A DNA stretch of 64,000 nt from Bigelowiella natans CCMP2755 (taxonomy: Eukaryota; Protista; Cercozoa), in NCBI GenBank assembly GCA_000320545.1, contig ADNK01000765.1, positions 1-64,000 of the forward strand. Reading direction: 5' to 3'. Below, piece after piece: positions 1,921-59,728 of this stretch. A program made the position numbers and the translations under genes. The notes below the pieces were generated by a model, which saw only the letters and a program-made list of their open reading frames with translations, was not told where the DNA came from and did not search any database. Position 1 is the first letter of the stretch. Each line of letters begins with the position of its first letter.

Positions 1921-3459
1921 TATGTGTGTGTCGCACTGGTTATTTTATAATCTGTGTTGGTGGTAGAAAAGATAGATACAACTCTTTCTGGCTGTCCTCC
2001 TGCTGCTTTGTTATGCACTTATGCACTTTTTGATGATGAGCTGCTTTGTGCTACCCCTACTTCTGCTACGCCTAGACCAAATTGAAATGAAGGTCGAAAA
2101 TGCATCATTGTCCAGCCTCGTCAGCAAGATTCGAAAGGATGGACTCGAATGGTAGCTATAGTTGTGGCGTAATGATAGTTGTGTTAATAGTTGTAGAAAG
2201 AGCAGCAGCAGTAGTAGTAGTAGTTGTAGTAGTAGTTGTTGTTGTTATAGTATGGCAGTAGTCATAATCATTGTGTGGTCGTCGTGATTAAGCACGTCAG
2301 CTCCAAACGAATAAAAATCCCGAAACACACACGTAAATATTAATGCACGCGCGCGCGTGTGTGTGTGCCGGTGCTCGTGTTCGGCGACAGGCAAAATTCC
2401 CTCCCCGAACTCAAAGAGGGCTCTAGTGACACTTATCAGCTCATCAAGGAGGACTCGCTTGAGAAACGGGTCGGTCGGTTAGCTAGTCTCTTTTCTCTAG
2501 ATCAGTGCTGCATCGTCTTCATGTAATCGCCACCACTGTTGTCTTCTTTGTCTTCTTCTTCTTCTTCTTCTTCTTCTTCTTCTTCTTGTCGTGGTCGTGG
2601 CGCCGTGGCGATGCTGACAACACGTTTCTGTTGTGTTGTGTTGTGTCGTGTTGCGTGTGTGTGTGTGAAAAGGGCGAGAACAACACCAAGTTCAAGCCAC
2701 GGCTCTTCAGACTGGTAGTAGCTTTCACATCTCCATCATCACAAGTGTCCATGCATAATAGCCCCAGCACGCCAACGTGTGCTGCCTCGAAGTTGTCGCG
2801 CCCACTGTATCACATTTACGTTCACATTGGTTGAATAAGCACGGGGAAAGATATATCGGCATGCTGCTTGCTGACTTCTATTTAGCTATCTCGCCAACCT
2901 ACACCTTCTCTGCACGATAACGATAATATTTCTTCCTTCTGTTCTGTAGGTTCAGGTCAAGGACGACTACTTCCTCAAATATTACGAGGAGCAGAAGAAA
3001 GGCGAGCGGTGGAGAGGTACGGAGAACCCACAGGGAAGGAGGAAGGGGGGGTTGAGAGGGATAAACGTGGTGCTAACGAGCAGCTTTATGCACTTTAAGT
3101 GATTTGCGGCCTCTTTTTATTTCTTGATTCACCACCCCATTTCCTCATGATTTTGGCTTTGGTATTTTGATCGATGATATATCTACCATTATTCCCAGGG
3201 GACATCCTCCTTTCCGCGAAGGGGGTAAGTAAATAAACAGCACAGCCCACGTGCATGCAGCCCTCCAGTTTTCATCATCATCATCATCATAACTATTGTC
3301 GTAAGCGATGTAGCCATATGTATAACATTGTGCCTTTTAACAAACCAAAGGTATCTGTGGAATTGGGAGAACGCCATGAACAAAAGCAAGGTGCTGAAGA
3401 AACTGTCGTTGCTTATTGAGTGGTGGGGGGGGGGGAGGGGGGGGTCCACGGCGTTGGTC

Positions 3460-3501
<42 letters not shown>

Positions 3502-4710
3502 ATTTCTACCCAATCTCTGGATATCGATGATGAATCGGCCGTTTATTTTAACAGAATTTATTCTGAAGACTGCCAACAGAGACTACCATCTCAGGGCAAT
3601 GAGGTGGGGCCTTCTGTTGCATTGTTTATTTACGTTACATTGCGACTGCACTCCGCCAAAAAAAATAGCGGTGTTCTCTGAGTGGGTGCGAGCCGATGAA
3701 ATGATACAATCACTGCTTAAAGTTGGTCTTGATTTAGTTCCAGCTTCTTTTTCAGTTTGAGAGGAGACCGTATCTTATTCCTAATCCCTTACTCGCAATA
3801 TCTTTCTCCCCCACCATCCCCCCCATAGACCTAAAATCGCGAGGGAGTGGGTCAAGGTACTAGCGTAAGAGAGAATAGAGTATTCCTATAGAAGAATCAT
3901 TGTGAAGGCGAGCAGAAATGAATTCCTACCTTCATTTACCTCCAGCTGTGTAGTTACCTGGGGATATCTCCTTTCATGTTGGTTTCGTTAATGCCACAAC
4001 TGCGCCTATTGATATCTTTCCCCCTGTCGTCGTCGTCGTCGTCGTTGTTGGTGTATTCCTTTTGTCCACAGGCCATCAACGAGCGTCTGGAAGCTTTCAC
4101 TCCGAAATCTTTCTTGAAGCAGAAGCAAGTACTCGGTTCCATCTCCCAGGTCAGTCCTGCTCGTTCAGAAAACTAAATTTGTGAAAGAATAGTCAACAAG
4201 CACGCACGAGGGGGGGGGGGGGGAGGTACGTGGTCATAGTAGTGCTTGTTGCAGTAGTGGCGCTTTTGCGTGGCCTCAGAGTGATAGGTCTCTTTTTGAC
4301 ATCTCCCTTTCCCCCCGCCTTTCGTACGTGTGCGTGATGTTTGCTGGCGATAGATGGTTGAATTTGTCCGAGAAAAGAGTCGGGACGACGAGAAAGGCAA
4401 GGATTGTGATTAGAAACGAGAATGACGTTATTGGGCATTTGACGATGAAAGATTGTATCTCCAAATTATCGATTAGTGCAACACAAATCCACTCTTTGTA
4501 TATGCCCGCCCCCCCCCCCTTCTAATTTTCGCTGCTTACCTAATGGTCTCATCGATTTGGTACTGCTCAGATTTTCCTGATATAGGCATCTCAAGTAGCA
4601 GCTTAGCGTCCTTAGATGAAGAGGACTACGTCGATACTTCATCAACCGACTACGGGTATGGTAATGGTGGCAATGTGTATACAACCACGATGCCTGCTGA
4701 ATGAATGTTG

Positions 4711-4744
<34 letters not shown>

Positions 4745-7085
4745 CGATGTGTGATGAATGAGAGCAGCAAGGGTATTTTTTTGGTTAGAAGACATCAACC
4801 GCCTTACAATATCATTCGATTATAGCACTGGTCTTCCCACGATATCCATCCATTCATCCCATCCACCAATGCATTGTCATCATCATCATCATCATCATCA
4901 TCGTCGTCGTCGTCGTCGTCGTCATCGTCATCTCATCATCAGGTTTGAGATGAACCGTTACTATCCTATAATCCATTCTCTCTCCATTATCACCGGCGAG
5001 GTTCGTACTTTGAGAAAGAAGAAGAAGGAAGAAGAAGGCATTCCTCCCCATGTCTACCGGAAACCAACCATTTCTCGGCACACCATCGATTAGTAGACGG
5101 CAAACATCATGACACTACTTCCTTTCATACTACTGCTCAGAAACCGAGCTCTGGGCCGAAGAATAGCGGGCTGTACACAGGCTTCGATCTTGAAAACACG
5201 CCAGATAAGCTTTATATGGATGGCAGTAAGGTGATTCTGCTGCTGCTATTCCTGGGGGAGGGTGGTGATGAAGCCCCTGTCTATTATCATTGTCAATTTT
5301 ATCGTCATCATTCAACCGATCCATCGACCCCTATGCTACTGCTGCTGCTGCTGCTTGAACAGATCCGGGCGGCGACTTTGGAGAAATGCGTGATGAAAGC
5401 TACCGCAGACGTAATAACAAAAGTAGTAGCTGTTAGAGAGAAGGTTACTGGCAGATGCATATACACACTACTGCGGCTGTTCTTTCAAGCTAATTGTAGG
5501 AGAGTATAATGGGTGAGAGCTGACAAATCTCGCAATGGTGTGTTGTATTAGGGAATTAACGAAACTCAAGTTGAAATGGTAATAATGCAGTAAGTGGTGG
5601 TAGCTGCTGATGCTGCATTTTGTGCCGTTGCCATCGCAAACAGGGCATGAATCGCAAACATAGCGGCGGCGCTGTTGCTTCTGGATGATGAAAAAAGAGA
5701 ACTCATTACTATTGATGATGAATGATGTTGAGTATGTCCGTTTGTGACGTATCTCGCTCTCTCTCCTTCCTGTTTTGTTGTTTCTCCTCCTTCTTCCAAA
5801 GATCTTGACGAATTTCCCCATCTCTACAACCCAAATGGAGCTCTTAAAGGTGTGTGATCCACCCCCCTCCGTATATTCCTATTATTACTATTATTGTCAT
5901 TATTATTATTGTTATTATTATTAGTATTATCATATCCGTCTCTACGCCATCATCATTATCACTATCATTACCACCATCATCACTGCCATCGCCATTGCTT
6001 TTCTTCTCTGATCGTTTTTCGCAGGCGTTGATAAAGAGATATTGCGTCCCAACTCCACTCAATCTCACTTCTGAGGTCAATTCGATATTCATGAGGGGGG
6101 GGGGAGAGCCTCTGTGTATGGATGGGTGATTGCCTATGTCACGATCGGGAAGGGGGGGGGGGGGGGGGACAAGGATAGGTATATTATAGCTGCATCAGGG
6201 AAAGGGGAGGCGGGGGGGGGGAGGGCTATCAAAAGGAAAATGTTACGACGACACGACAGCATGCCAGCATGCCAGCACGCACTGAACACATAACATACCA
6301 GCCCTTCTCCTCTTGATCTTCCGTTGACTGCACTGCTGCTGCTACTCACTTGAACAGGAGCTTGAAGACGTGAAGAAAACCATGGCTCAGATCAGAATAG
6401 CAGTCCTCCTCTTCATCAACATATGGGTACTACTACTCCCATCCATAATCAGAATTGTCATTAGCGCCATCAAGCCTCCTCCTCCTCCTCCTCATCCTCC
6501 TCATCATCATCATCATTATCACCATCAGCATCGCTATTCCAGTCTTGCATATACGAAAACTGTACTAATCCCCTTTCGCCCTTGATCAGCTCCGAACCCA
6601 TTCCTCCGACTTCACGACCGACACAGCGAGCCTGAAGAAGCATACCTCGGCCTTCCTCAACGCAGTCATGAACGCGGCCCTCTCGCCGTCCGAAGTCGAG
6701 ATCGCAGATCAAAACCTTACGTATCTGCACAACATCAATGCGTCGGTGGTCAAGCGCCTCCACTCCATCGAGGTTTGGAAGAATCATGTTAAGAGACGGC
6801 GGCGATTATGATTATGATGATGATAATGATGATGATGATCATGATGAGGAGGAACAAAAATTGGTCCCACAGCATCCCTGTTACGACAAGCAGTCGCTCC
6901 AGGAGGAGCAAGGGGTTGTTCGAAATGTGCTAATGCGAGCTGCTTTCTCGCTTGCTTGATATTGTCGTGTGTGCTAGCAATCAATTATTTGCTGAGCATG
7001 ATGATTGTGACTGTGGCTTTGTTCTTCTTGCTTCTCCAGGAACTCGAATCTGCAGGATCTGGTGTCCCCGAGAAGAGGGTAGAGT

Positions 7086-14082: not shown

Positions 14083-16086
14083 ATGAGTAGAACGAAGGAG
14101 GGAGTGCAAGAAAGCATCGTGCCTTACTGTCTGGTACTACATGTGCTAATATACCAAGGCGAAATTTTTGCTCGCTTACACGTTTCACCATGCGTGTTCT
14201 TTACTAACACAGTTCTACACCCTCCCCCTCGTGGGCCTGGCCAGTCTTTACGCCTTGGGAATATGGTACGGAGAGATTATTTGTGGTAAAGATTGCGAAT
14301 TTATTGTATGAACCTCAATGGTCAAAAGGTCATACGGTGGAGCAATGTTTGCTTTCGGCTGCATTCCAGTAATGGATCTGCTCGTATCGGTGAGTCGCTC
14401 CTCAGGTTTATACTAGAGCGGTACCCAACATCCTATGTGCTTGTTTCTTTAGGAAGACACCACAAACCCTACAAAAGAACAAAGTTCGCGTTTGGCACGA
14501 GAGTTCAGATTCAAAGTAAGCGAGTACACTCATGTTGTATGCTGGGTCGTGAATAGTTTCCAAATTTTCATATCCCATACTCGCAAGTGTTGTTTTGCGT
14601 ATGTTCGTTGATTTCTTGTTTTCTGCTTTGTTCCAAAGTTGATCCCAGCCTTCTGGGTGCCTACGCAGTTTGCATTGATGGTGTATAGCGGGTTCAAGTT
14701 TTGCACCCCAGGACTGGCCCTGTATGAATACATCGGCATAATTACTTCAATCGGAATTCTTGCCGGCAGCATTGGAATCAACGGTCAGCTCAGCTTAAAC
14801 TTGCAGCATCGGCTACTGCTACTACGAATACATTGTTATTTTACAACGAACACATTGCTTCATTACTTATGACACCGATCTTGCCAAAAAAATTGGCGGT
14901 ACCTTCCTTGCTAAATTTTAAAGTCATTTTCTATGGACAGTCGCCCACGAATTGATCCACAAGCCAAGCTGGTGGGAGAAGTTGCTGGGACGAGCACTTT
15001 TGGCTTCTGTGTGCTACGGTCACTGGGCTGACGAGCATTTATACGGGCACCACAAATTGGTTTCGACCCCCTTTGATCCTGCAACCAGCCGATTCGGTGA
15101 GTGGCGAAGAGGCGGCGAAGATATACGAGAGAGTGGGACGACGACCTGCTTGTGTGTCCTTTGAATTCTTCACAAGTGTTGTAGTACTTCATAAAATGAT
15201 ATGCGAGAGTGCACGATGATTAAACGGAGATGTCTTCAATCATTGGTGGATGATTTGCTTTTTAAATATCGGAACAGGCGAGAGTTTTTACACGTTCTGG
15301 TTTCGCACTGTGTGGGGGACATGGACATCAGCCCTCGACATGGAAAGGAGAAGACTTAGAAATGTGGCATTCCCTGAACGAATTCTTCGAGACAGGGTGT
15401 TCCTATCTTGCCTATCGTCCCTTGCTGTTGCTGCATGCTTCGGGCTTCTCATGGGGCCCTACGGCGTGCTCTTTTTCTTCCTGCAATCACCGGTTGCGTT
15501 CACTATGCTGGAGGCAGTCAACTACATTGAACACTACGGGCTGCAGAGAGAATTGGTTGAAGGAGCTCCTTCGATGAAGGAGCTTGAGAAAAGGAAGAAA
15601 CTGGGCGACTATGGTTACGTGGCCTCCGCCTTTGAGTCCGTGACCCCATTCCACTCATGGAACGCCGGCGAAACAGTCACAAACTACTTTCTGTTGAAAC
15701 TGCAACGTCACAGCGATCACCATGCAAACGGGTATCGACGTTATCAGGTAGGAACAGCAACAACACAAAACTGTGAAGTCAGACCTTGCCAGCGCTGTTA
15801 GTGCGGTGGGAAAGAATTATCTCATGATAATCTGTTTCAGGTGTTACGTTCATTCCTCGCCAGTCCACAGCTTCCAACAGGATACGCAGGGTGTATGGTT
15901 CTTGCCACCATTCCTCCCCTTTGGTTTGCTATTATGAATCCGCGGGTGAAGAAAGTTAAGTCGCAAATCGAGTACATCAAGGGGACAGGGATAAACGTTT
16001 TTTCGGATGAATTTGACGTTTTGGCACGTAAGGAAGGCAGCGTCGAAGCGGCATTACGAAAGATGAACGAGGGAAAGAAAAAATGA
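14083..16086 (+). CDS. alkB: Alkane 1-monooxygenase (AlkB family membrane di-iron enzyme), multi-exon
   Basis: All AlkB motifs present: AHELIHK, EHLYGHH, DPATSRFGESFY, NYIEHYGL, HSWN, LQRHSDHHA, PQLPTGY, IPPLWF..MNPRV. Confidence 0.93.
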
Positions 16087-16442
16087 CTCGTCCGATTATT
16101 TTCTCATGTGCAGTGACCTGCACTGCTTCCGGCGACGGTGTTTAATTTGATATACGTATGCCCGTTGCATCTTCATGACCGATGTCAAAAAAAGTATAAA
16201 GATGGCGGTAATAATGCAGATACTTCCTGTATCTATTCGCTTTAGTTAGATCGTATTAGTCGGAACAATAATATGATCATGTCTAACTTATATTATGTAC
16301 GTAGCATAGCATAAAGCTTACACCTGTACATATTGCAGCTGCATGCACGCAGCACGCAGCACGCGTAAAGCGGCTACGTACAATACAGCAGGCCAGCGCA
16401 TGCACACGAGTGTGACAAGCATGACGACTGACTGCTACATGT

Positions 16443-16500
16443 GACGGATGTAATAAAGTGATTAAAGCTTTTCAATGGTTATAGTCATCCTGATTTAGCT
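16443..16500 (-). mobile_element. Degenerate LINE 3' tip
   Basis: Reverse-complement similarity to the conserved end aggatgaccattgaaaa...attacatccgtc of the LINE at 49460-51422. Confidence 0.6.
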
Positions 16501-19657: not shown

Positions 19658-19698
<41 letters not shown>

Positions 19699-19704
<6 letters not shown>

Positions 19705-19745
19705 CGGATGTAATGAAATGTTTAAATTGTTTCAATGGTCATCCT
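19699..19745 (-). mobile_element. About 45-bp LINE 3' tip ending in an intact (TA)n tract (19661-19700)
   Basis: Reverse complement reads aggatgaccattgaaacaatttaaacatttcattacatccgtctca followed by (TA)n. Confidence 0.8.
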
Positions 19746-19794
19746 TATATATATATGTATGTATATATATTAAATTATCTCTCTGAACTAATTA

Positions 19795-19995: not shown

Positions 19996-20029
<34 letters not shown>

Positions 20030-20032
<3 letters not shown>

Positions 20033-20364
20033 CACATGCAAAACATTGCAAGACATGGACCACATTCTGCAATGCAGGAAATACGGACCACAGAGACTCA
20101 GAATCAACAAACAACTGACGGCGATCATGGATCGCAATGATGAGACCACGCGCCTCACAACCGCACGAAAAACAAGTGGAGAAGCTGCGCGCAAAGCGCG
20201 ACATGCTAGACCAAATCATGATGCATTTTCATGCATGCGCCATGTGACCAAGGAAACAAACAGATGCAATTTAAGCGCTGTAGCCGCTGCATTGCACAGC
20301 TACATTAGGATGACCATTGAAAAATTTAAACATTTCATTACATCCGTCTCATATGTGCATGTGT
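20030..20364 (+). mobile_element. 5'-truncated LINE fragment, copy A (C-terminal CCHC zinc knuckle + 3' end)
   Basis: Translates to DTCKTLQDMDHILQC...AVAAALHSYIRMTIEK, homologous to the end of ORF 50154-51401. Starts right after a (TA)n tract. Confidence 0.88.
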
Positions 20365-20374
20365 AAAAAGATTC

Positions 20375-20563
20375 ACGAACTGTTGCGCGCAGCGCGCGAC
20401 AACATCGATCGCACGAGGACGCTTTCAAATGCATGAAGCACGTGGTGGCAGAAACCAACAGACACAATGTCAGCGCTGTAGCCGCTGCATTGCACAGCTA
20501 CATCAGGATGACCATTGAAAAAATTTAATTGTTCATTACATCCGTCTCACATGCACACACACA
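20375..20563 (+). mobile_element. 5'-truncated LINE fragment, copy B (same subfamily as 49460-51422)
   Basis: Near-identical to about 51245-51422. Confidence 0.9.
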
Positions 20564-22194: not shown

Positions 22195-22280
22195 AATAGC
22201 GCTATAGCCGCTGCATTACGCAGCTACATATAAGGATGACAACATTGAACAAATTCAATCGATTCATTACGTCAGTCTTA
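22195..22280 (+). mobile_element. Degenerate LINE 3' tip
   Basis: agcgctatagccgctgcattacgcagctacat..aggatgac..cattgaa matches the LINE end. Confidence 0.7.
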
Positions 22281-22838
22281 CAAGCGATGTGGACGTGTAC
22301 CTGCTACGCAGCATGGCTAGATGGGCGTGCGTGATTGGAACGAGCATGCATGTTGAAAAGTCGACGCAAGACAGGAGCAAGTGTACTGTGAGCGATGCAA
22401 AGTAATGTGTGCATGTCATTCCCGTACAATTTAGCTTTACACGTATACATGATACCATAATTCACAATTTCACATTAATGTATCCTCGTTATTCTTTGTT
22501 AAACGGACTTACATCTGTAACGCATAGAGCACAATCAAGATGGCTAGTCCAAGCAAGTTGGCAAGTTGCACATATATGTCCAGTGGTTCTACTTATTTTC
22601 ATTTAAATAGAAACAGAATGTGTTGCAATATAAAATAACAGATATAACTGCTGGCCAGGTCTAAATGGAGATGGCAGGTGGTTGAGTAAACACTTCATTG
22701 TATTAATACTTTGACGCTTCACTCCAAAATAAAGTTATACCAAAGAAGATGGTCGTTAGTATTGTTATGATGATGGGGCCATGGTCTAACGGAAAAGTGA
22801 AAGGTTGACCAGATTTTACATCGGATTGTGGACACCAG

Positions 22839-38339: not shown

Positions 38340-39365
38340 GATGTAGCCATGTCTAGATGCTTTTGACTTAAAAGCGACTGAACATTGATAAGATTGGCAT
38401 TCATTCGCCAGACTTCGAGTGCAGAAATTGTTGCGATGGTGACCGCCACAGTGCTGTGTTCACTGTCTTGTGGGCCATTAGAGCAGCCAAGCTGACGCAA
38501 GCTAGCAAGTTATCACGCACAACGCTACGCACTTCACGCGCAAGCACAAAGGTCAGGAACGTCCAGACGTCCAGTCGCCTCCACTGCATGGTCCAACACG
38601 TCTAGACGTGCATGTCACAGTGCATGAACACATCTGGACACAGCTAGACAGCTCTAGAGCTAGACAGCCGCAGACAGCAAAGATGATGACACCATGCTAG
38701 CATGGTCATGTGCAGTCTAGCAGTGCGTGCTGGCTAGCTGGCACCACTCTGGCACTGCTATGTACAGCTAGACTGCTGCACTGCTAGACTGGCGCTAGCT
38801 AGCTAGCTAGCTGGCTAGCTAGCCAGGCTAGCTAGCTAGAAGGCGCACTGCTGGCTAGACTGTCCACACCGACGTGCACCTGCTAGCCTGGCGCACGGAC
38901 AGACAGGGCCCGGCCGGGAAACGCACGGGGCACGCCTGCCAGCACGGCGGTCGGGTGCTCCAGTCCAGCAGTGCTGCTCACTTCCTCACTTGCTCACTTG
39001 CTGCACGCGCTGGCGCGCACGACAATGCTGCTGGCTAGATGGTCACCACAGAAAACACGCTGTGCAGCATGTTCTAGATGTTGCCTAGATCACGCTGTGC
39101 ACACGAAATGGGCTGCTACTGGACTGAGCGACCGTCCGCTAGACGCAGATCGTGCATCCAGATGTCGTCGTGCGCATCGCCGCAGCGATCGTGCAAAGTT
39201 GCATTGCCAGGTTGTTTTCGTGCAATGAGCTGGCAAGGACAGCCACGCACGTCGACGCACACCACATTGCATCTAGATTTCTTCAGGGCGAGATGGTGCA
39301 GTGTGACACTGTCACGGACTCAGACGCAGTCCCCCATCCCCCCACCCACCGGGCTAGCTGTGCAG
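38340..39365. repeat. Strongly TpA-converted intergenic repeat patch, CTAG-rich
   Basis: Nearly all remaining TA dinucleotides are in CTA/TAG context, mostly CTAG (gctagctagctag). CATG, TGCA and CACG are abundant. Confidence 0.7.
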
Positions 39366-40241
39366 GGTCTGTCTCGAAGAAGATGGTGTCTTGCAATGCA
39401 AAAAAATGTTGATGGGTTTTGCGGGGCTCGAGACACTCTCGGTGGTCTCAGAACTTTCTCCATTTTTCTGTCGCTTATCGCCTTTCTCTCTTGGATGATG
39501 GATTCGATCCTACCGGGTACGCTCGACATCTCGATTTGAATTGCGCCGTTCCAAGACTCACCTCATCTCAACATGAATCGCATCAGAATTCAAAAGGACA
39601 TATTTTCAGATTTTCCGAGGAAGAAAGCACTGTCTCTTTATGAAATTACATCACAATCGAATATTTTTTAATATTTTTTAGCGAATGTGGCAATCTGATC
39701 GTGTGTACATGTGATGGTACATCCCATTGCTTAAAAATTACCCCCCTTCGCCCCTCTTTTGATCCTGCACCCCTATTTTCTTGCTGTAATCAGAATCAAA
39801 TCTGTGTTCTTCAATATTTTACTTTGGCAAATGTCCTTAGTGTCACATACCTTTACTGAAATTCTTCATGTCGTCATATTAAAGTTTATAAAAATCTGCA
39901 AGATTTCTCCCGACAATGAAAAAGAAGAATACTTACAGATCATTCGCTAAAAATGGCTTGAACTACCATGATTTTGATAGTCGAAGGTGAGAATCCCGGG
40001 GATAATTAAATATTAAAAAACAATGGAATTACCTTCTGCGTCAAGGATTTCTGGTTGTCACACAAGCAAAACAGAAATTCATCTCTTTAAATCACATAAC
40101 TCAACTCTTCCCCCCCCCTTGCCCCCGAAACCTCGCGAGGTTTGAAAATCCATCATGAAATGGATGTTATAAACTCTAATAGCTTCTAGATCTAGTTTTT
40201 TTTCCAAATTAAAAGGAGAAATCTAATTGCTATGTGACAAA

Positions 40242-45452: not shown

Positions 45453-48313
45453 ATGACTGCCATGATGACAGCTATACTATTGGCTGTCGTCTTCATTCTA
45501 GTGGCCAGTTTTGCTCCGCAGACGGCCCGTCATCCAGGAGTAGTAGCACCACAACAGATGAAACTCTCGCTTACAAGAGCTGCCCGCCTCCTTTCGCCAG
45601 GGTCTACATTTAACCCAAAAGCCTCTTTAAGGGGCGAACAAGCGCGACTGGTATCTTCAAGGCTTACGACGCAGCCCCTTATGATGGAAGTGATGCAGCC
45701 GAGGCACATAGGGGTATCCCCGAAGAGGCGAGCCGCCAGAAAGAAGAATGGAAAGTTTTCTGTCGGAAGCATTTTTAGAATGGTTTGTGCTCATTAAATC
45801 CCATTATAAGATTTCGATATTTATAGCCCGTATACCAATAGTGATGAGTTATACTGCGTTCATTGTGTAAGTGTTGAAGAACAACGTTGTGCAAATATCA
45901 GAACACATGCAAACACACACATACACCCAACAATCTATATCAATTTTATGCATACGTGTATGTGCATGCAGTTGCATATACAAATATGGCACAGTACACG
46001 GGAAGATCGTGAGATAGATAGGGAGAGAGAGAAACATTGTCTTGCATACGACAGATGAAAACCTCAAGGGAAAAAGCAGACGATGAAGTCGTCAGAAGTA
46101 TCCAGAAGTGGCTGAAGATGCGCCAAGATCCATTACTTATGCCTACTGCACTATCTAGCATGGAAGGTACGGTTCCCCAATTCTGGGAATTAGGGCAACA
46201 CACATGTCTGCACCATGAATATCGTTATTCTCCAAAACTTATCGCTTACCAACCTCCTACATCGTATTCGGTTTACCACGTCGGCAGATGCGAATGAAGA
46301 TCGTCGCCTGGTCATAATCGTTAATCCTACAAGCGGCGGGAAAACCGGGCTCAAAGTCCTACACGATATAGTTCTGCCTGTTCTTAATGCCGGTGGAATC
46401 CACAAGATCACGGTCGGAAGAGCATGTTTTTGTGGTGTTTGCGTGTGTGTTTATACTTGTATGGTGTGTACTAGCCGGTGGTGTCCGTGTATCGATCCTT
46501 TCGAACCATCAGGTGCCAGCAGCTGAGTGTAAGTGGTGTTGTGTCGCGTGATTGCGCAAATGCAGGTGGTTGAAACACTATCCCGGTTTAGCGTTCCGCA
46601 GCAGGTCGCAGACTTGAATCTAGACGAAATCGATGACATTATAGTGATCGGTGGTGACGGGACGCTCTGTGGAGTCGTATTGGGACTCAGTAAGCACCAA
46701 GGTTAGGCCTTTCCACGAGTGTCGATGATGAGAGGAAAGGCGATAATGGTGATAATGCCACCTTGATATGCACGTATTTGCTCAAACGCATCTGATGTAT
46801 ATGTTAGCGGAAAAAGCTCTGTCAGTACCCGTTGGTCTTATTCCTTGTGGCTCCCACAACCACATGTTCAAAGTCATGTCAGGATTCAAGAACGTCCACG
46901 GCAGGTAATAGCATTGATACGCGCAGCAACAGCAGTTATATTGTAAATGTTGGACTTATCCCATCAGCATTATTCTCCAAATTTCGCGAGTTTGGTGATT
47001 AAACTACTACAGCTGCCACCGCACCATCTTCCCAACACCGCCCTCTTCTTCTTTGATCCCTTCCTTCATATTCAACAACTTGCCGCCGTTTATCCATTCT
47101 TCCAGAGTTAGGCAGAGGGACGTGCTACTTTCCCTTTACCGTGTATGCAGACATGAAACGACGAACCTGACGATACCACTGGTGCAAGCAGATGGCCGTG
47201 ATGAGGTCGTCGGAGAGTAACAGTGGTTATGTGAAAGTAGTTGTTGGTGCAAGTCATCATAGACCTTACGACGACCACTACGACGCGCAGAGAGTAGCGC
47301 TTCTATCGTTTTTGTATGTGCTGCAGCAGTTAGATATGACAACGCCATGGTGTGTCTTCCTCACATCGTATCTCTCATCAGAGCCCATTCATGTGTGGGC
47401 TGTCGTTCGCACTCCTGGCAGCGGCATTCAAAACATCCGAAAAGCTTCGATGGACGGGTCTCAGGAAGACACGCTACTACGCTTCCATTCTCTATCACAT
47501 CTTCAGGATGAGAAAGTAACGATAACGTCGGATATGCCGCAGTCTGGGCTCTGTCCGCCTCCCACCGCTCGAATCCGTTGATAATGGCGATTGATTTTAA
47601 ACTTCAGGTACAGCTATGATGTAAGATATCTACCTGCGACGTCAGAGGAGGTGCCCCCTAGTATGGCCCCAGACACCTTTTCCGAGGTAGGTATATAATA
47701 GCTAATATCAGTACAGCAGCTGCAGGTTAGACGTCGTAGTCGTCGTAGTAGTAGCAGTAGCAGCAGCAGCAGGTATTGTCTGAAATCTATTTTTGGGGAG
47801 AGAGAGAGAGAGAGAAAGAGAGATCAGCAGCCCTAAATACCAACATATCTTAAGCTCTACCACAGCCTTCGATAGCCGATATTCTTCTTCCCCCTCCTCC
47901 CCGCGTTCAGTCCTTGGCGCCATACTAAGAGTCGGGTGTTTGTATGTGTCTTATCGTCGTCGTCCTCTTTATCGCGTGCATGCATATTTATTCATGCACG
48001 CATTGCAGGAATGGGTTGCTGAGACCGGTCCCTACCAATGGCTGGGATTTAGCCCCCTCTCATTTGGAGTGCCTAGAGAAGGTAAGTCAATGTACGTGGG
48101 AGTAGCACAGATTGTTTTAATCGATTCATGAATAGACAGGTTAGTATGAGAGCTGGGTATGAGGCACTGCGATAAACAAGTACTCCTTCGTTTTTGTGCT
48201 TGCAGAGGCGTTGAACGATGGGTGGGGTTATCTGATGACGATAGAGAATGCGAGGTCTCCCTTCGGTATCATTAAAACTGTACTGAACCCCAGGTAAAAT
48301 GTCTCTCTCTCTT

Positions 48314-48391
<78 letters not shown>

Positions 48392-48795
48392 TGGGTGTGG
48401 GTGTGTAGAGCATGCGTTGTGACAACGCAAGCCATACAACTGAGATAGTTGGAGCATGCAGTTTCGTGCATCATTTGGTGATTATGTGTTACTCGTTTTC
48501 TCCCCCTGAATCTTCCTATCCCGACAACGGCATCATCTATAGCCTGAAGATGTGGGAGACTGAGAAAAATGCCCGGCTGGTGAATGTCAAAGCATTGTCT
48601 ATAAGGCCTCTGGGAGACGACAGAGTAACTGATGAATGCCGTTGGATGTACCTCCACGAATGTGATCCATTTATACATTTTCTTTTTTTTAACAATAATT
48701 ATAACAAGGAATGGAATATGGATGGAGAAAAGATGGACAATTTTGATCAAGTATATGTCAGATTTGCTCCCCAGCCTGCTAAGTACCTAGGTTAA
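45453..48795 (+). CDS. DAGK catalytic / sphingosine-kinase-like lipid kinase with signal+transit-like presequence
   Basis: IIVNPTSGGKTG, IVIGGDGTL, VGLIPCGSHN and C-terminal NMDGE. The hydrophobic N-terminus MTAMMTAILLAVVFILVASFA is followed by an R/S-rich stretch. Confidence 0.82.
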
Positions 48796-49459
48796 AACGT
48801 ACTCGCCGACATAGCAATAATCCTGCATATTTCGTGTGTAAAATCCTACAGCTAGCTCTGAAAACTATCTACTGAGCATTGAACCATTAATCCTCATGCG
48901 TTGCGTGTGTCTATATTGTATGTATAAGACGGATGTCATAGCAATGACATGATTTCATGTGCATGTGTGTGTGATGTGTGTGTGTGTGTGTGTATGATTG
49001 ACAAAATAAAAGCACACGATCTAGCGATGGATGCTCGCCCTCTAGCGCGAGCAGCACGTAGCGCCACAAGCTACCAAGTCAGGTTCATGTTCTCACGCGT
49101 AGCACGTCGCACATGGCGCATGAACAACAACGACTTGCCCTTTGCTAGTTTGCGCGCACAAATAAACTCATCTCAACGGACCTGGCACCACAATTTGAAC
49201 AATGTGTGGAGCCGCCCTAGCGCACTGTGAGTGCCATGTTGCATGTGCGCAAAGCACAGTGTTTTTCGGCGCAATTAGCTAGCTAGACAACGTTGGGGGC
49301 GATCAAGATCAGGCTAGCAGGGTTGGGTTTGCATGCTAGCTAGCTAACTGGCATGGGGTTGGGATCAGGATCAGCTAGGCCAGCAAACTAGCGTGACTGT
49401 GTGCACAAACACCATGGTTAGCCATGTTCAACATGTCACGTGGATGGGGTACCCGAGAT

Positions 49460-51422
49460 GGCTCACGCAAGGCGGCCATTTTTTGTCTCATCCCCAAGGC
49501 CAACAAAGAACTTGACACCCCTCTCAACGGGAGAACAATTTCTCTCCTGCAAGTGGCTTCAAAAATGGAAGACAAACTGACAGAGCAACGTCTCCGCGAA
49601 GCTGTGCCCCCCAAAAACATTGGCAAACATCAGTGCGCATTCATGAAAAATCGATCCTGTGAAACTGCACTCACAAAGATGACGCAGTCAATCGAGGATG
49701 GAGTGTGCAATGAAAAGCTTGCAGCCATCACATTGTTTGCAGATGCCTCCAAAGCTCATCCAAAAGCCTGGCATTCCGGCATGATGCGCAAGTCACATGA
49801 CAAATGCGGAATGCGAGGCTCGCTGTTGCTGTGGATCGACGACTGGCTCAGAGATCGCACCGCAAGATTCAGATTTGGCAATGCTCTCTCTGAGCACATG
49901 AACCTTGGGAGCGGCGTCCCCGAAGGATCATCTCTCAGCTGTTTCCTTTTCATGACCTGTTGCGATGTTCACGAACAAATTGCCAACACAGATTTCCAAA
50001 CGTGCTGTGACGACGTCACCCCCTGCAAATCATTTTCGCCAAACCGATGGGGGAAAATGCAAGATGATGTCCAGGCCGACCTGAACCAAACGACGGACTG
50101 GTGCATGAAATGGCGGATGCGATTCAATGGGGACAAGAGCGGGCACCTCATGATTGACAAAAGAAATGAAGCCCACCGACACCAAACCTCCTGGAACATC
50201 TCTCTCAATCTCCAAGGCAAAACAAAAAGAGTCGACAGCGGCAGATGTCTCGGTCAGCGGACCAATCTTCGACAACAAATTGACCTTTGAAAAACATGCT
50301 CTTGCTTCTCACCTGAGATTGCAAAAGAAGCGAAGGTTTTTGTCAAGGTTGTGTTGTTCCAGACACCTTGCACCGCCAAATGTCAGACTGAAATTTTGCA
50401 AATCATGGTTCCTTGCATCCAGCAGATGCGCAGCTCCAACATGGAGATCACGAAGAAACATGCGAATGAAACAGATGGATTCCATGGAATCCCAAACCCT
50501 GAAACGTGCATTGGGATTGCCTGGATCCATCTCCAACGACGTCCCCCACGTCCTCACTGGCACGTTGCCACCCCGATGTCAAACCAAAGTGCAGTGTGCT
50601 AAATCATGGTTGCGCACTCATGCATGGATCGACACAGGCAGCGGTCCTCAAATCCATGAGGGAATGAATGATTGGAGCAGTCATGGCTTCATCATTGAAA
50701 ATCGAAAAATGCCAGATGGCACATCGTGGATTGATGTGTCCACAAATGCGTGGAACAAAGCATCCTTGTTTCGTCGGCTCAAATCGATCACTGACGATTT
50801 GTTAGATGACGAATTGCCCACCGTTTTGGCGACAACAGAGGCGCTGAAAAAAGAACTGAAAAAACATCACAAGGTGGTGAAATCCTGTGCTTTCAACGAA
50901 TTCGAAGAGGAATGGTCCAATGATTCATCACGCGCTGTGCATCTCAAGAATCTTGGATTCCTCCCGTCATCTTCGATCACCGGCATCAAACCAAAACTTT
51001 CAAGTGTTGCTACATCATGGATGCGCGCCATCTGTGGTGTCGGCAATCTTGGAAAATTCATGTTCTCACGTGGACAATGCACAGAGAAAGATGCCACGTG
51101 CGATGCATGTGGCATCCTGAAGGACATGGATCATCTCCTGCAATGTCCAACACACAGTCGAGAACAAATCAGATTGCGCAATCAAATGCGCGCGATCATG
51201 AATCGCAACGACGACACGAACCGGCTGACAAAGGCTGAAAAGGACTCCAGAACTGCTGCGCGCAGTGCGCGGCAACATCGGTCGCATGAGGACGCTTTCA
51301 AATGCATGAAGCACGTGGTGGCAGAAACCAACAGATGTGACATTAGCGCTGTAGCCGCTGCATTGCACAGCTACATCAGGATGACCATTGAAAAAATTTA
51401 ATTCTTCATTGCATCCGTCTCA
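49460..51422 (+). mobile_element. Non-LTR retrotransposon (LINE) ORF2 remnant: RT domain to CCHC knuckle, 5'-truncated, frameshifted at about 50260, TpA-hypermutated (copy C)
   Basis: LIPK..RTISLL..QCAFMKNRSC..DASKAHPKAWH..GVPEGSSLSCFLF..CCDD..W..KWRMRFNGDK..CLG/IFDNKLTF..CDACG..DHLLQC. Confidence 0.93.
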
Positions 51423-52206
51423 CAAACACAGTTGCATTTGTGCGCATGTGATGTCATGTCCATTGTCATGCAGGGTTGGGCTTGTAGGCAGGGTCGATCG
51501 GGTCAAAGGGAAATTGCGACAGAGACTCATTGCATGCTAGCATGTGTCATGACGCAGCGTGACTGTCTAGCTGTGCTGTGCGCGCAATGGCACGACAGCA
51601 GTGCGATTCCATGCGCCTGTGGTGCAACGTGCTTGTTACAGCTCACACGCACATGTGTAATAAGTGATCTGGACGCGACTTGTGACGGCTTATAGTTATG
51701 ACGAACCTTGATGCATGAGCCTATAGATTGATGTGTTAGAAATATACATAGGGATGTGCACATTAGCTTGCGCAACTATGTTCATGTGCTCATCATCTCA
51801 CTGTGTTTCCTATGCGTGCCTCTACCACATTGTAATGTTGTCGCAGCAGTGGTCCTATCTACATCCGATGCGGCCGCACACCGCAACCTGCGACTAACAT
51901 TCAATACAAGCGTGCAGATCCGAGCCATAGGTCGAGAGCTGCATTGTTCGGGTGATTATACATGCTACAGCTTCCTCTTCTTCTTCTTTTATTGTTGCTG
52001 TTAGTAGCTCATACTTGCTATTTCTGTTCGTATGGTTTCATGATAGTATTTCTAGTCTGCTTTCGACGGCGATACAGCATTTCCGCGAAAAATAATAATG
52101 CGGGGCTACCTCCCTCTCACAGTGACACACATCATACTATCCTATATCCTTCAGAACTGCTAGAATTTAGCGGGAAGTTTACTCATATCCCATGAGGGCT
52201 CACTCA

Positions 52207-56988: not shown

Positions 56989-57137
56989 ATGCATTTTCAT
57001 GCATGCATGCAACATGTGACCAAGGAAACGAACATACACAATTTAAGCGCTGTAGCCGCTATAGGTACCGCTACATTGCATAGCTACATTAGGATGACCA
57101 TTGGAAAAATTTAAACATTTCATTACATCCGTCTCAT
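56989..57137 (+). mobile_element. LINE 3' fragment, copy D (subfamily of copy A)
   Basis: Near-identical to 20221-20352 but retains more TpA. Confidence 0.88.
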
Positions 57138-57263
57138 ATTTCATTGTTTACACTTTACACATCGTATGCCTCTATGCACAACTATGAGTTGCGCTACGTA
57201 TACATGCAGCGCAGATGTGTGATGATGTATCAGATGCACCTAGCTAGCTTAATAATTGTACAT

Positions 57264-57325
57264 ATGAGACGGATGTAATGAATAATTAAATTTTTTCAAT
57301 GGTCATCCTGATGTAGCTGTGCAAA
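57264..57325 (-). mobile_element. LINE 3' tip, copy E, inverted relative to D
   Basis: Reverse complement reads gcacagctacatcaggatgaccattgaaaaaatttaattattcattacatccgtctca. Confidence 0.85.
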
Positions 57326-57518: not shown

Positions 57519-57609
57519 CAAGCGCTGTAGCCGCAGCTTTGCATAGCTACATTATTAGGATGACTATTGCATTAATAAAAGATTTAATTTTTACTAGCTT
57601 CCGTCTCAC
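57519..57609 (+). mobile_element. Degenerate LINE 3' tip, copy F
   Basis: agcgctgtagccgc..gcatagctacattattaggatgactattg..ccgtctca. Confidence 0.75.
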
Positions 57610-57810
57610 AATTGAAAATTTAACATTCTTTACATCGATTCGTCTTACAATTAAAAAAGTAGCTGTGTCCCATCGTATCGTCAACTATCTACCAAGCACC
57701 GCTACATCTAGACATGCAAACACAAACGTGCCAATTTTAGTATTTAACAGTTAACTTCATGCGTACACAAAGTCTTGCTTGTGTAAGCCAGCAAGAAGCC
57801 CAATGATCCA

Positions 57811-59355
57811 TCATATTAGGCAACTCAATCCAGACTGAAGAGGATGAGGGATGCATCCAGTAGGAACATTGAAATTTGCTGCACCCGTGATAGGTTGTTG
57901 CGCTGGACAGTAGCTCTTACCTGCAGCCAAGGTTCCGTGAAGAGAACTTACTTGAGAAGCCGAGAGTTCTGCGGACATGATGATGGCCTGCCAAATTTTC
58001 CCTATGAAAGGATATCCACCCCCTTCGTACTCATATCCAACATGTAATTCTTCCCCACCATTCACACCGCTGAATGACCCAGTGCTTTTGAGAATTCCGT
58101 CTATGTACACTTTCCCTGTGTAGGAACCTGCAGACACGGCGCTACGCGTGAAAACGATGGAATGCGCTGATACTCGTCCAGCGGAGTCAAATATCCCCGG
58201 ACTAGGATCAAATGAAGAGATGTAGTTTCCATCTTGAACACCTAGGGCGGTGTTTCCAGAATTCTTACCGACAAACCATTGAGTCCCGCCCGAGGTGTCT
58301 TTCCCACCGAAGATCGCTGAATAAGTCCGTGAATTTGTTCCTGTGTACTGGAACCAGGCAGCCACGGTGTATGCACCACCTCCTCCACTTGCGGTAATCA
58401 AATCAGACATCTTGAGGCCTGTGTTGATAGAGCCAGAACTGAAGACAAGATGATCCCCCGAGCTGCTAACGCCACCTGAAATGGTTCCATCGTTCCCCCG
58501 TGCGCTAATATCCTTTATTACTCCGCCATTCACTGGACTTATGCCAGGGTTATAGTAAGCCACAACTGAATTTGGACAAACGGCTGCTCCACAGTGTAGA
58601 TCATTTCTAGCAAGCCTTCCGTGAAGGATTGCCGCCTCTGCAGCACTAAATTCCGTTTTTAGGATAATTGCTTGCCAGATTTTGCCTTTGAACGAATAAG
58701 CTCCTCCGAATTCCTTTCCTATAGTGAGTTCCTCTTGATTATTGACACCAGTAAAGCTCGCACTTGCCTTAAACGCGCCATCGATGTACACTTTCCCTGT
58801 GTAACTGCCACCAGAAGCTGCGCTACGAGTGTAGATGATGGAGTGAGCTGACGCCCGTCCTGCGGCGTCGAATATCCCAGGACTAGCAACGAAATTGGAA
58901 CGGTAGTTTCCATCTTGAACACCAAGGGCGGTGTTGCCAGAATTCTTACCAATGAACCATTCAGTCCCGCCTGTGGCGTCTTTTCCACCAAAGATCGCTG
59001 AGTAGGTCTGTGAATCTGTTCCCGTGTATTGAAACCATGCTGCCACGGTATACGTACCAGCGCCACCGCTTGCCGCGATGACATCGGACATTTTTATCCC
59101 TGTGAGTATGGAGCCGCCATTGAAGGCGACATGATGGCCTGATGTGGACACACTCCCTTCCACGGTACCGTCATTGCCACGCGGCCCCAAGTCTTTCCAT
59201 TTGCCACCTGAGATCGGGGAGGCGTCTTGGTGATAGTAGGCCAGCACATCAGATGTACAACCCTGCAAAGCGTGAACGGGTGCGCTGAGTAGCAGCACCA
59301 TCAAGAAATGGAGCACCCGTAATGTTCTATTTCCATCCATGGCCATCATCTGCAT
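57811..59355 (-). CDS. Intronless secreted protein with two tandem LamG/ConA-like (Laminin_G_3) beta-sandwich domains
   Basis: Signal-like VLHFLMVLLLSAPVHA, then two roughly 225-aa repeats (KD...RGNDGT..G, YTVAAWF, GKVYIDG, F.GKIWQAII....S). The ORF is open to 59424. Confidence 0.8.
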   Translation of the reverse strand: MQMMAMDGNRTLRVLHFLMVLLLSAPVHALQGCTSDVLAYYHQDASPISGGKWKDLGPRGNDGTVEGSVSTSGHHVAFNGGSILTGIKMSDVIAASGGAGTYTVAAWFQYTGTDSQTYSAIFGGKDATGGTEWFIGKNSGNTALGVQDGNYRSNFVASPGIFDAAGRASAHSIIYTRSAASGGSYTGKVYIDGAFKASASFTGVNNQEELTIGKEFGGAYSFKGKIWQAIILKTEFSAAEAAILHGRLARNDLHCGAAVCPNSVVAYYNPGISPVNGGVIKDISARGNDGTISGGVSSSGDHLVFSSGSINTGLKMSDLITASGGGGAYTVAAWFQYTGTNSRTYSAIFGGKDTSGGTQWFVGKNSGNTALGVQDGNYISSFDPSPGIFDSAGRVSAHSIVFTRSAVSAGSYTGKVYIDGILKSTGSFSGVNGGEELHVGYEYEGGGYPFIGKIWQAIIMSAELSASQVSSLHGTLAAGKSYCPAQQPITGAANFNVPTGCIPHPLQSGLSCLI

Positions 59356-59417
59356 CGCTGTTGTGACGAAACCTACAAATTTACAAATTGCCCTAGATAT
59401 ATTACACATCGAATTCA

Positions 59418-59728
59418 GGTTCATCTCTCAAGATTTCGTACTGTCATTGCGCGGCAAGACCAGAATGTTGCATGCGATTTTTGTAATGCGACATCCAGAA
59501 TAGTCCCTGTAGCATAAAAATACCATCATTTCTGCCCATTCTGTGCGACGCTCGCTCGTAGCTCTTGTCGTCGAGCGATGCATTTAACTCATCTGGGTGA
59601 ATTCCATGTAGATCTAGATCTAGATCTAATCCATGAATTTCTAGACTTCCATGGACTACTTTAAGACCGACAGAAGACAAGTTTTGTTTTCGGAAATCCT
59701 GAAATCTTGAAATCTTGAGAGATGAACC
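59418..59728. mobile_element. MITE with 20-bp perfect terminal inverted repeats
   Basis: ggttcatctctcaagatttc (59418-59437) and gaaatcttgagagatgaacc (59709-59728). Flanked by CA on the left and TA on the right, consistent with a TA target-site duplication. Confidence 0.75.

Follow-up and report, generated by a model that had tools for sequence, protein, structure and literature searches.

TpA erasure in a LINE family of Bigelowiella natans: age series, polarity and sequence context of a mutation process that is RIP-like in effect

Targeted mutation of the TpA dinucleotide has been described in Bigelowiella natans. In MA lines of this chlorarachniophyte, a marine alga, de novo T:A→C:G mutations have been found only at TpA, at a rate of ~6e-7 per site per generation, which is ~1000 times the background (Mettrop et al., 2026; 10.64898/2026.01.13.699255). 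These mutations were measured in two viral inserts, a single-copy NCLDV insert and a virophage insert, and the targeting of transposons was deduced from Pfam enrichment only, since RT, endonuclease-RT and DDE domains are over-represented in TpA-poor coding sequences (10.64898/2026.01.13.699255). The same authors liken the process to RIP and propose the ADAT2-like deaminase Bn78255 (10.64898/2026.01.13.699255). No transposon family was aligned in that preprint, whereas LINE copies are aligned here, and the words CTAG, antisense, gradient and retrotransposon were sought in its main text without a match (10.64898/2026.01.13.699255). No other description of a TpA→TpG/CpA spectrum came to light in our searches of the literature. 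The preliminary description of the present locus could not confirm that the process was undescribed; it has been described, because the preprint shows it de novo in B. natans. What is new here is the age series, the polarity from the ends inward, the resistance of CTA/TAG, the presumably inherited 3′ scar and the match with antisense RNA, all of which should help in the search for the guide of the mutator.

The locus lies in a window of 64,000 nucleotides (the whole stretch of DNA that was analysed), and its features are the following:

49404–49412, + strand: likely left copy of a 9-bp target-site duplication (CACAAACAC), a 9-mer common to both ends
49415–51422, + strand: TpA-hypermutated, 5′-truncated LINE copy, the 3′-terminal 2.0 kb of an element of 4.96 kb (matches nt 2960–4962 of a full-length copy)
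49424–50290, + strand: RT remnant ORF of 288 aa with no Tyr (RVT_1, E 1e-15; 87% identical to unhit ORF2)
49452–50599, no strand assigned: TpA-free run, 0 TpA observed and 70 expected
49631–49642, + strand: QYAF→QCAF, by comparison with unhit copies
50003–50014, + strand: CCDD, part of IYCDD→TCCDD by comparison with unhit copies
50154–51401, + strand: C-terminal ORF2 remnant (ORF of 415 aa); C-x2-C-x8-H-x3-C zinc knuckle at ~51099–51146
50251–50257, + strand: 7-bp insertion that frameshifts ORF2, of ambiguous exact placement, from the alignment with two sister copies
51421–51429, + strand: right copy of the target-site duplication, overlapping the CA-type tail of the element

The depletion of TpA at 49452–50599 is confirmed. 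This run of 1148 bp, bounded by the nearest TpA at positions 49450 and 50600, contains none of the sites expected from base composition; the chance of such a result is ~1e-29 at the TpA rate of the window, and still ~1e-15 if a rho of 0.5 is assumed. The whole LINE copy (49411–51424) keeps 9 TpA vs 128 expected. Between 49452 and 51398, observed/expected ratios are 0.05 for TpA, 1.79 for TpG, 1.36 for CpA and a normal 1.22 for ApT, and all six surviving TpA are in a CTA or TAG context. The preliminary description was therefore right in claiming that TpA is absent from the run where tens are expected and ApT is plentiful and, as the ORF translations confirm, that Tyr is missing from the 288-aa ORF and occurs only once in the 415-aa ORF. 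Its claim that the neighbouring genes have normal TpA stands for the exons flanking the LINE (24 vs 33 and 29 vs 40 expected), but the name DAGK given to one of them depends on a weak DAGK_cat profile match, to the catalytic N-terminus (46302–46415, + strand; E 0.005), and no link was found between it and the exon ending at 48795. Other genes of the window include a fatty-acid desaturase exon (15250–15801, + strand) and a laminin-G/ConA-like lectin protein (57811–59424, − strand).

The genome (91.4 Mb in 3736 contigs) is that of B. natans, as shown by its 100% match with a protein of this species (EukProt EP00466, JGI Bigna1 68657). It was searched for further copies, and the window copy has been found to be 93–95% identical to at least 40 of them. 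The full-length element, of 4.96 kb, comprises ORF1 and ORF2 (APE endonuclease, RT and C-terminal CCHC knuckle), with open frames of 486 and 1179 codons, respectively; Pfam profiles RVT_1 (PF00078) and Exo_endo_phos_2 (PF14529) match the full-length ORF2. As in other LINEs, 5′-truncated copies, a common 3′ end, a simple-repeat tail and target-site duplications are present. Relatives at E ≤ 1e-20 are three only; a Tara contig is 76% and a Logan contig 56% identical in amino acids, and a PDB search with ORF2 gave no match. The 7-bp frameshifting insertion of the window copy is independent of the TpA process. Elsewhere in the window, two adjoining LINE 3′ fragments at 20028–20552, one from the sister family (91% aa identity to P0004) and the other from the family of the window LINE, are TpA-poor (9 vs 22 and 4 vs 11 expected). 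At least six 3′-tip fragments of 55–90 bp are also present (16440–16500, 19697–19751, 22197–22282, 57068–57139, 57262–57324, and 57521–57610); the five that were counted have no TpA depletion, perhaps a sign of a length threshold.

Natural copies were used as comparators, and the window copy was scored against one natural unhit copy. In this comparison, transitions are found at 63/146 TpA bases vs ~2.5% of other bases (0.43 per base at TpA vs 0.024/0.026 elsewhere). The same measure gives 0.45 vs 0.006 for L016, one of two young hit copies; relative to the unhit copy, L016 carries 58 TpA transitions and 12 other changes, and the second, C1193, carries 67 and 13. TpA transitions thus dominate the copy alignment, and intact copies keep both TpA and Tyr: about 12 young copies, at least 99.5% alike, hold ~200 TpA, and 40–41 Tyr in open ORF2 frames. 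Neither of these results is the one that would have refuted the preliminary description. QYAF and YCDD are read in the unhit copies and in both outgroup LINEs, so that TA must be ancestral. A reading in which the TpA-poor state is an intrinsic codon bias, or in which polarity is reversed and a RIP-like process made the TA-rich copies out of TA-poor ancestors, could appeal to the final 235 codons, TpA-poor even in open-frame copies; it is ruled out, with scarcely any probability left to it, by the TpA-rich open-frame copies, by the tyrosines kept in the outgroups and by the fact that TA-poor copies differ in TG vs CA at one and the same site.

The outcomes over 13 copies are TA→TG in 438 cases, TA→CA in 339 and a double change (CG) in nine, which bears out the earlier claim of a strand-symmetric process with TG and CA in one copy. 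Copies mostly agree in the choice of TG or CA at 45–70% of sites, and no strand runs were found in the outcomes of the 13 copies, so that a strand-processive action was rejected. The mixture of TG and CA, the poor agreement between copies and the absence of runs indicate that the changes were made site by site, in double-stranded DNA and after insertion. The direction of change, its specificity for TpA, its occurrence on both strands with a largely independent choice in each copy and its action after insertion are all direct observations of this comparison. Single copies could be blurred where the assembly has collapsed repeats; in three DNA runs from 2025, each TpA variant listed is one that an assembly copy also carries, and contigs drop rare variants.

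By the genetic code, TpA→TpG/CpA never creates a stop codon; the process kills by missense and leaves long open frames, notably through the loss of the RT tyrosines of QYAF and YCDD. In the whole window copy, 16/17 Tyr codons have been changed (11 to C, four to H, and one to R), in accordance with the earlier claims that the Tyr of the RT motifs was lost (QCAF, CCDD) and that a targeted TpA mutator destroyed this copy. A proposed change of YLG to CLG was mistaken, because CLG is also read in unhit copies and in the 76%-identical sister family, and therefore is no mutation of the window copy. The demonstrated part of our reading, that the window copy was hit after its insertion by a TpA mutator identical with the published process, is very probably correct.

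The chemistry is less certain. An A→G change with a 5′ T fits the spectrum, and T→C on the opposite strand gives the same sequence; the simplest chemistry, put forward in the preprint as well and in our view somewhat more likely than not, would be the conversion of adenine into inosine in the DNA by a deaminase of the TadA/ADAT type, made permanent when the DNA is replicated. Profile searches of the genome, which give coordinates only, found six loci of the dCMP/cytidine-deaminase family and one of the ADAT1/ADAR type (A_deamin). These candidates lie on C980, C570, C3623, C3286, C1679, C3588 and C2414, and they include an ADAT2/3 pair. Alternatively, the modified base could be thymine, converted into 5hmU or 5fU by TET/JBP-like oxidation and then mispaired with G. 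Because TA→CA on one strand is TA→TG on the other, adenine and thymine origins are not separable by sequence, and 5hmU is known to mark repeats in dinoflagellates. This alternative seems improbable, since near-pure transitions would better suit inosine and the genome has no Tet_JBP match, a weak argument because the control gave no match either. A search of the genome with the MT-A70 profile gave no match, a blank that is uninformative or weak. Several C5-methyltransferase loci exist in the genome, and an intron-free match to a bacterial-type C5 DNA methyltransferase (E 2e-76) lies in a 649-codon frame at C1391:110667–111599. Another possibility is that gaps in silenced DNA under repair are filled, with errors, by a polymerase like Pol eta, which has the WA hotspots of somatic hypermutation. 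At TA, this polymerase tends to change A into G, but it also hits AA and makes transversions, and in C1193 the other A/T bases show no excess of changes over G/C (5/2380 vs 4/2172); strand-coordinated runs are absent too, and this mechanism is more improbable still than thymine oxidation.

The LINE family constitutes a natural time course: some copies are untouched, in some erasure has only begun, and others are erased by half or fully. In a tree built with TpA masked, the 12/12 copies with a divergence above 1%, which belong to at least three subfamilies, are largely erased, and most of the young copies are untouched or barely touched, one being half erased and one fully erased. Every older copy has therefore been erased, and young copies range from untouched to erased. 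Early changes cluster near the 3′ end: in full-length young copies, which have 203 TpA sites, 13/14 fall within the 17 sites nearest to the 3′ end (p ~1e-13), and 10/11 when counted as distinct positions. One full-length copy, C1193, is also changed at the 5′ end. Its changed zones are nt 13–705 and from nt 2834 (up to 9/9 sites at nt 4001–4250), and its middle is spared (0/101 TpA sites changed at nt 751–2750). The 3′ end is TpA-poor in two lineages:

L040:6280–6983: TpA-poor 3′ end of the open-frame lineage
L047:4245–4950: TpA-poor 3′ end of the Tara Oceans sister family

In the open-frame lineage, the last 235 codons hold 5 TpA vs 33 expected from its own codon use, with CTA/TAG in 5/5; the Tara sister family is equally poor (12 vs 38 expected), and the more distant relative L048 is not (48 vs 42 expected). 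We interpret the TpA-poor 3′ end as an inherited scar, left when a master copy was hit there and survived.

Sequence context influences the fate of each site, and CTA/TAG contexts resist mutation. In the partly hit zones of C1193, TpA has survived in 18/30 CTA/TAG sites vs 11/64 DTAH sites (p 7e-5). Below nt 4250 of the erased copies, the proportion of sites that are still intact is 20% for CTAC/GTAG, 10% for CTAA/TTAG and 0–1% for WTAW. Since the resistance covers both strands of the site, it points to a preference at the level of the duplex. In Table S2 of the preprint, counted by eye, ~20/210 mutated adenines are followed by G, compared with ~21% in the background of this window, which is not that of the NCLDV region. 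TpA is also almost confined to CTA/TAG in the DNA on both sides of the window copy:

49011–49410, no strand assigned: left intergenic flank; 1 DTAH site and 11 CTAG, TpA almost only in CTA/TAG; no second copy found
51425–51636, no strand assigned: right intergenic flank; essentially single-copy, no DTAH, both CTAGs between exact 4-bp duplications

Both flanks are stripped outside CTA/TAG, and the footprint of the process is therefore ~2.6 kb, wider than the LINE. The excess of CTAG in the flanks as a pure escape from mutation was rejected in part, because many CTAGs, several of them in the left flank, sit between exact 4-bp duplications, which makes the excess partly a separate feature. In the whole window, 26/161 CTAGs are found between exact 4-bp direct duplications, vs no more than six in several hundred with control words; a CTAG with such a duplication is a stereotyped 8-bp insertion scar. 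An apparently single-copy, non-coding island at 38480–39474 is also rich in CTAG, which accounts for 27/32 of its TpA (12/27 between exact 4-bp duplications), with TpG and CpA at an observed/expected ratio of ~1.55. The possibility that the flanks belong to a MITE with 19-bp inverted ends (49053–49071 and 51615–51633) was not supported, since this pattern is no commoner than its control and no second full copy of either flank was found in the genome.

These contexts also bear on ADAR-like editing of the LINE transcript prior to its reverse transcription. ADAR prefers a U 5′ of the edited A, but TAG, its preferred triplet, is one of those that resist, TG and CA both occur in each copy, non-LINE flanking DNA has been hit and no edited TpA is listed among the RNA reads over the 5′ part of the element. 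Furthermore, the mutations of the MA lines are in the DNA of integrated viral sequences (10.64898/2026.01.13.699255). The two-strand pattern and the MA data largely refute ADAR-type RNA editing, and its probability is very small.

How the targets are chosen is a different matter. Mobile DNA is targeted and host genes are spared: the LINE copies are erased and the adjoining exons are normal, and some intergenic DNA is hit as well. The preliminary description claimed that the process is repeat-directed, in the sense of RIP; this is not supported, because ~10 full-length copies with at least 99.5% identity are unhit or barely hit, and apparently single-copy DNA of the window (the LINE flanks and the island at 38480–39474) has been stripped. 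Duplication is neither sufficient nor necessary for targeting. A true reverse RIP, in which duplicated DNA would be recognised by homologous pairing and TpA mutated in proportion to copy number, would agree with the start of the changes at the 3′ end, the most repeated part of the element, where depth and BLAST copies climb steeply to the tip, and also with the many copies in which erasure halts sharply at the border and leaves (TA)n tails or flanks intact. Besides the spared copies and the stripped single-copy DNA, it has against it the main target of the preprint, which is single-copy, and the 5′ zone of C1193, which is no more repeated than the spared middle (BLAST table); we regard it as doubtful. 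Where erasure ends at the element border, the guide of the mutator can be precise. Two young copies that are unhit or barely hit (L035 and L043, in C3064 and C2494) have 0.8–1.4 kb of TpA-stripped DNA directly downstream, so that a new insertion can lie in stripped surroundings without being erased immediately.

Transcription of the element provides another view of its ends. In one RNA run, of which 6% was read as short reads, nt 1–856 are covered 3–15×, on one strand only and in antisense. This transcript (L040:2048–2903) is spliced, with a 274-nt minus-strand GT-AG intron at L040:2274–2547 whose joint is crossed by nine reads with five starts, and it is reminiscent of the antisense promoter of mammalian L1. 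A solo 5′ fragment of the LINE (C255:97518–98331; element nt 4–817, 97% identical) corresponds in length to the part transcribed in antisense. In the same partly read run, the 3′ tip gives RNA from both strands and the middle is almost empty. The RNA of the family is thus found at the element ends, matching the zones where changes begin, with the 5′ match resting on one copy, C1193, which adjoins a TpA-poor remnant. An RdRP is present in the genome; searches of the genome with Piwi and PAZ profiles, insensitive with intron-rich genes and split exons, gave no match, which weakens a classical siRNA guide. We see an even chance that RNA or chromatin state, and not a RIP-like DNA–DNA pairing, directs the targeting, which would then spread inward.

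On this evidence, a sequence of events can be proposed. A 5′-truncated copy of the B. natans LINE inserted, and the host process of Mettrop et al. (2026) then turned nearly every TpA of its double-stranded DNA into TpG or CpA. A TadA/ADAT-type enzyme would deaminate DNA adenine to inosine, and replication would fix the change. The targets would be chosen by RNA or chromatin state, through antisense or double-stranded transcription that arises at the ends of the element and where genes converge, and the process would spread inward from there. A more specific version is tentative, and we think it rather unlikely: an RNA-guided DNA adenine deaminase without recognisable Argonaute, recruited at antisense or double-stranded RNA, such as that of the 5′ antisense unit of the LINE, of its abundant 3′ tip and of the spacers of convergent genes, and spreading inward along double-stranded DNA, could have driven the TpA-free 3′ end of the active lineage. 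If true, this RNA-guided deaminase would be a naturally occurring DNA editor, programmable and changing A to G, and an arms race between host and transposon would be recorded in the sequence. The sharp coordinates of the hit zones make the guide of the mutator directly testable against maps of small RNA, antisense RNA, methylation and inosine.

Among known systems, the closest is the process of Mettrop et al. (2026), which shares with the LINE copies the species, the TpA→TpG/CpA spectrum, the action on both strands and a patchy activity. Fungal RIP (RID/DIM-2, CpA→TpA) is likewise dinucleotide-specific, active on both strands, saturating and transposon-killing, but it changes C:G into T:A at CpA/TpG, whereas the changes in the B. 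natans LINE are the opposite, A:T→G:C, and make no stop codons. Fungal RIP also needs duplication and hits the duplicates, whereas the B. natans process hits single-copy DNA and spares many near-identical copies; and RIP is premeiotic, whereas the mutations of the preprint arose in vegetative MA lines. The B. natans process is, in consequence, RIP-like in effect, but it is not RIP. Regarding the enzyme, TadA, ADAT2–ADAT3 and the TadA-derived base editors convert A into G with a preference for 5′ T, as in the LINE changes, which on sequence grounds makes such an enzyme a candidate here; the preprint cites a report of natural activity on DNA in amphioxus ADAT2 (10.64898/2026.01.13.699255). The B. 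natans enzyme could be a natural editor of adenine in double-stranded DNA. In animals, APOBEC3 and ADAR are also responsible for a deaminase-type hypermutation of retroelements and viruses, but they act on single-stranded cDNA or RNA in the course of replication and leave one-strand patterns, whereas the B. natans process acts on integrated double-stranded DNA and on both strands. To our knowledge, it is the only A:T→G:C mutator of genome defence.
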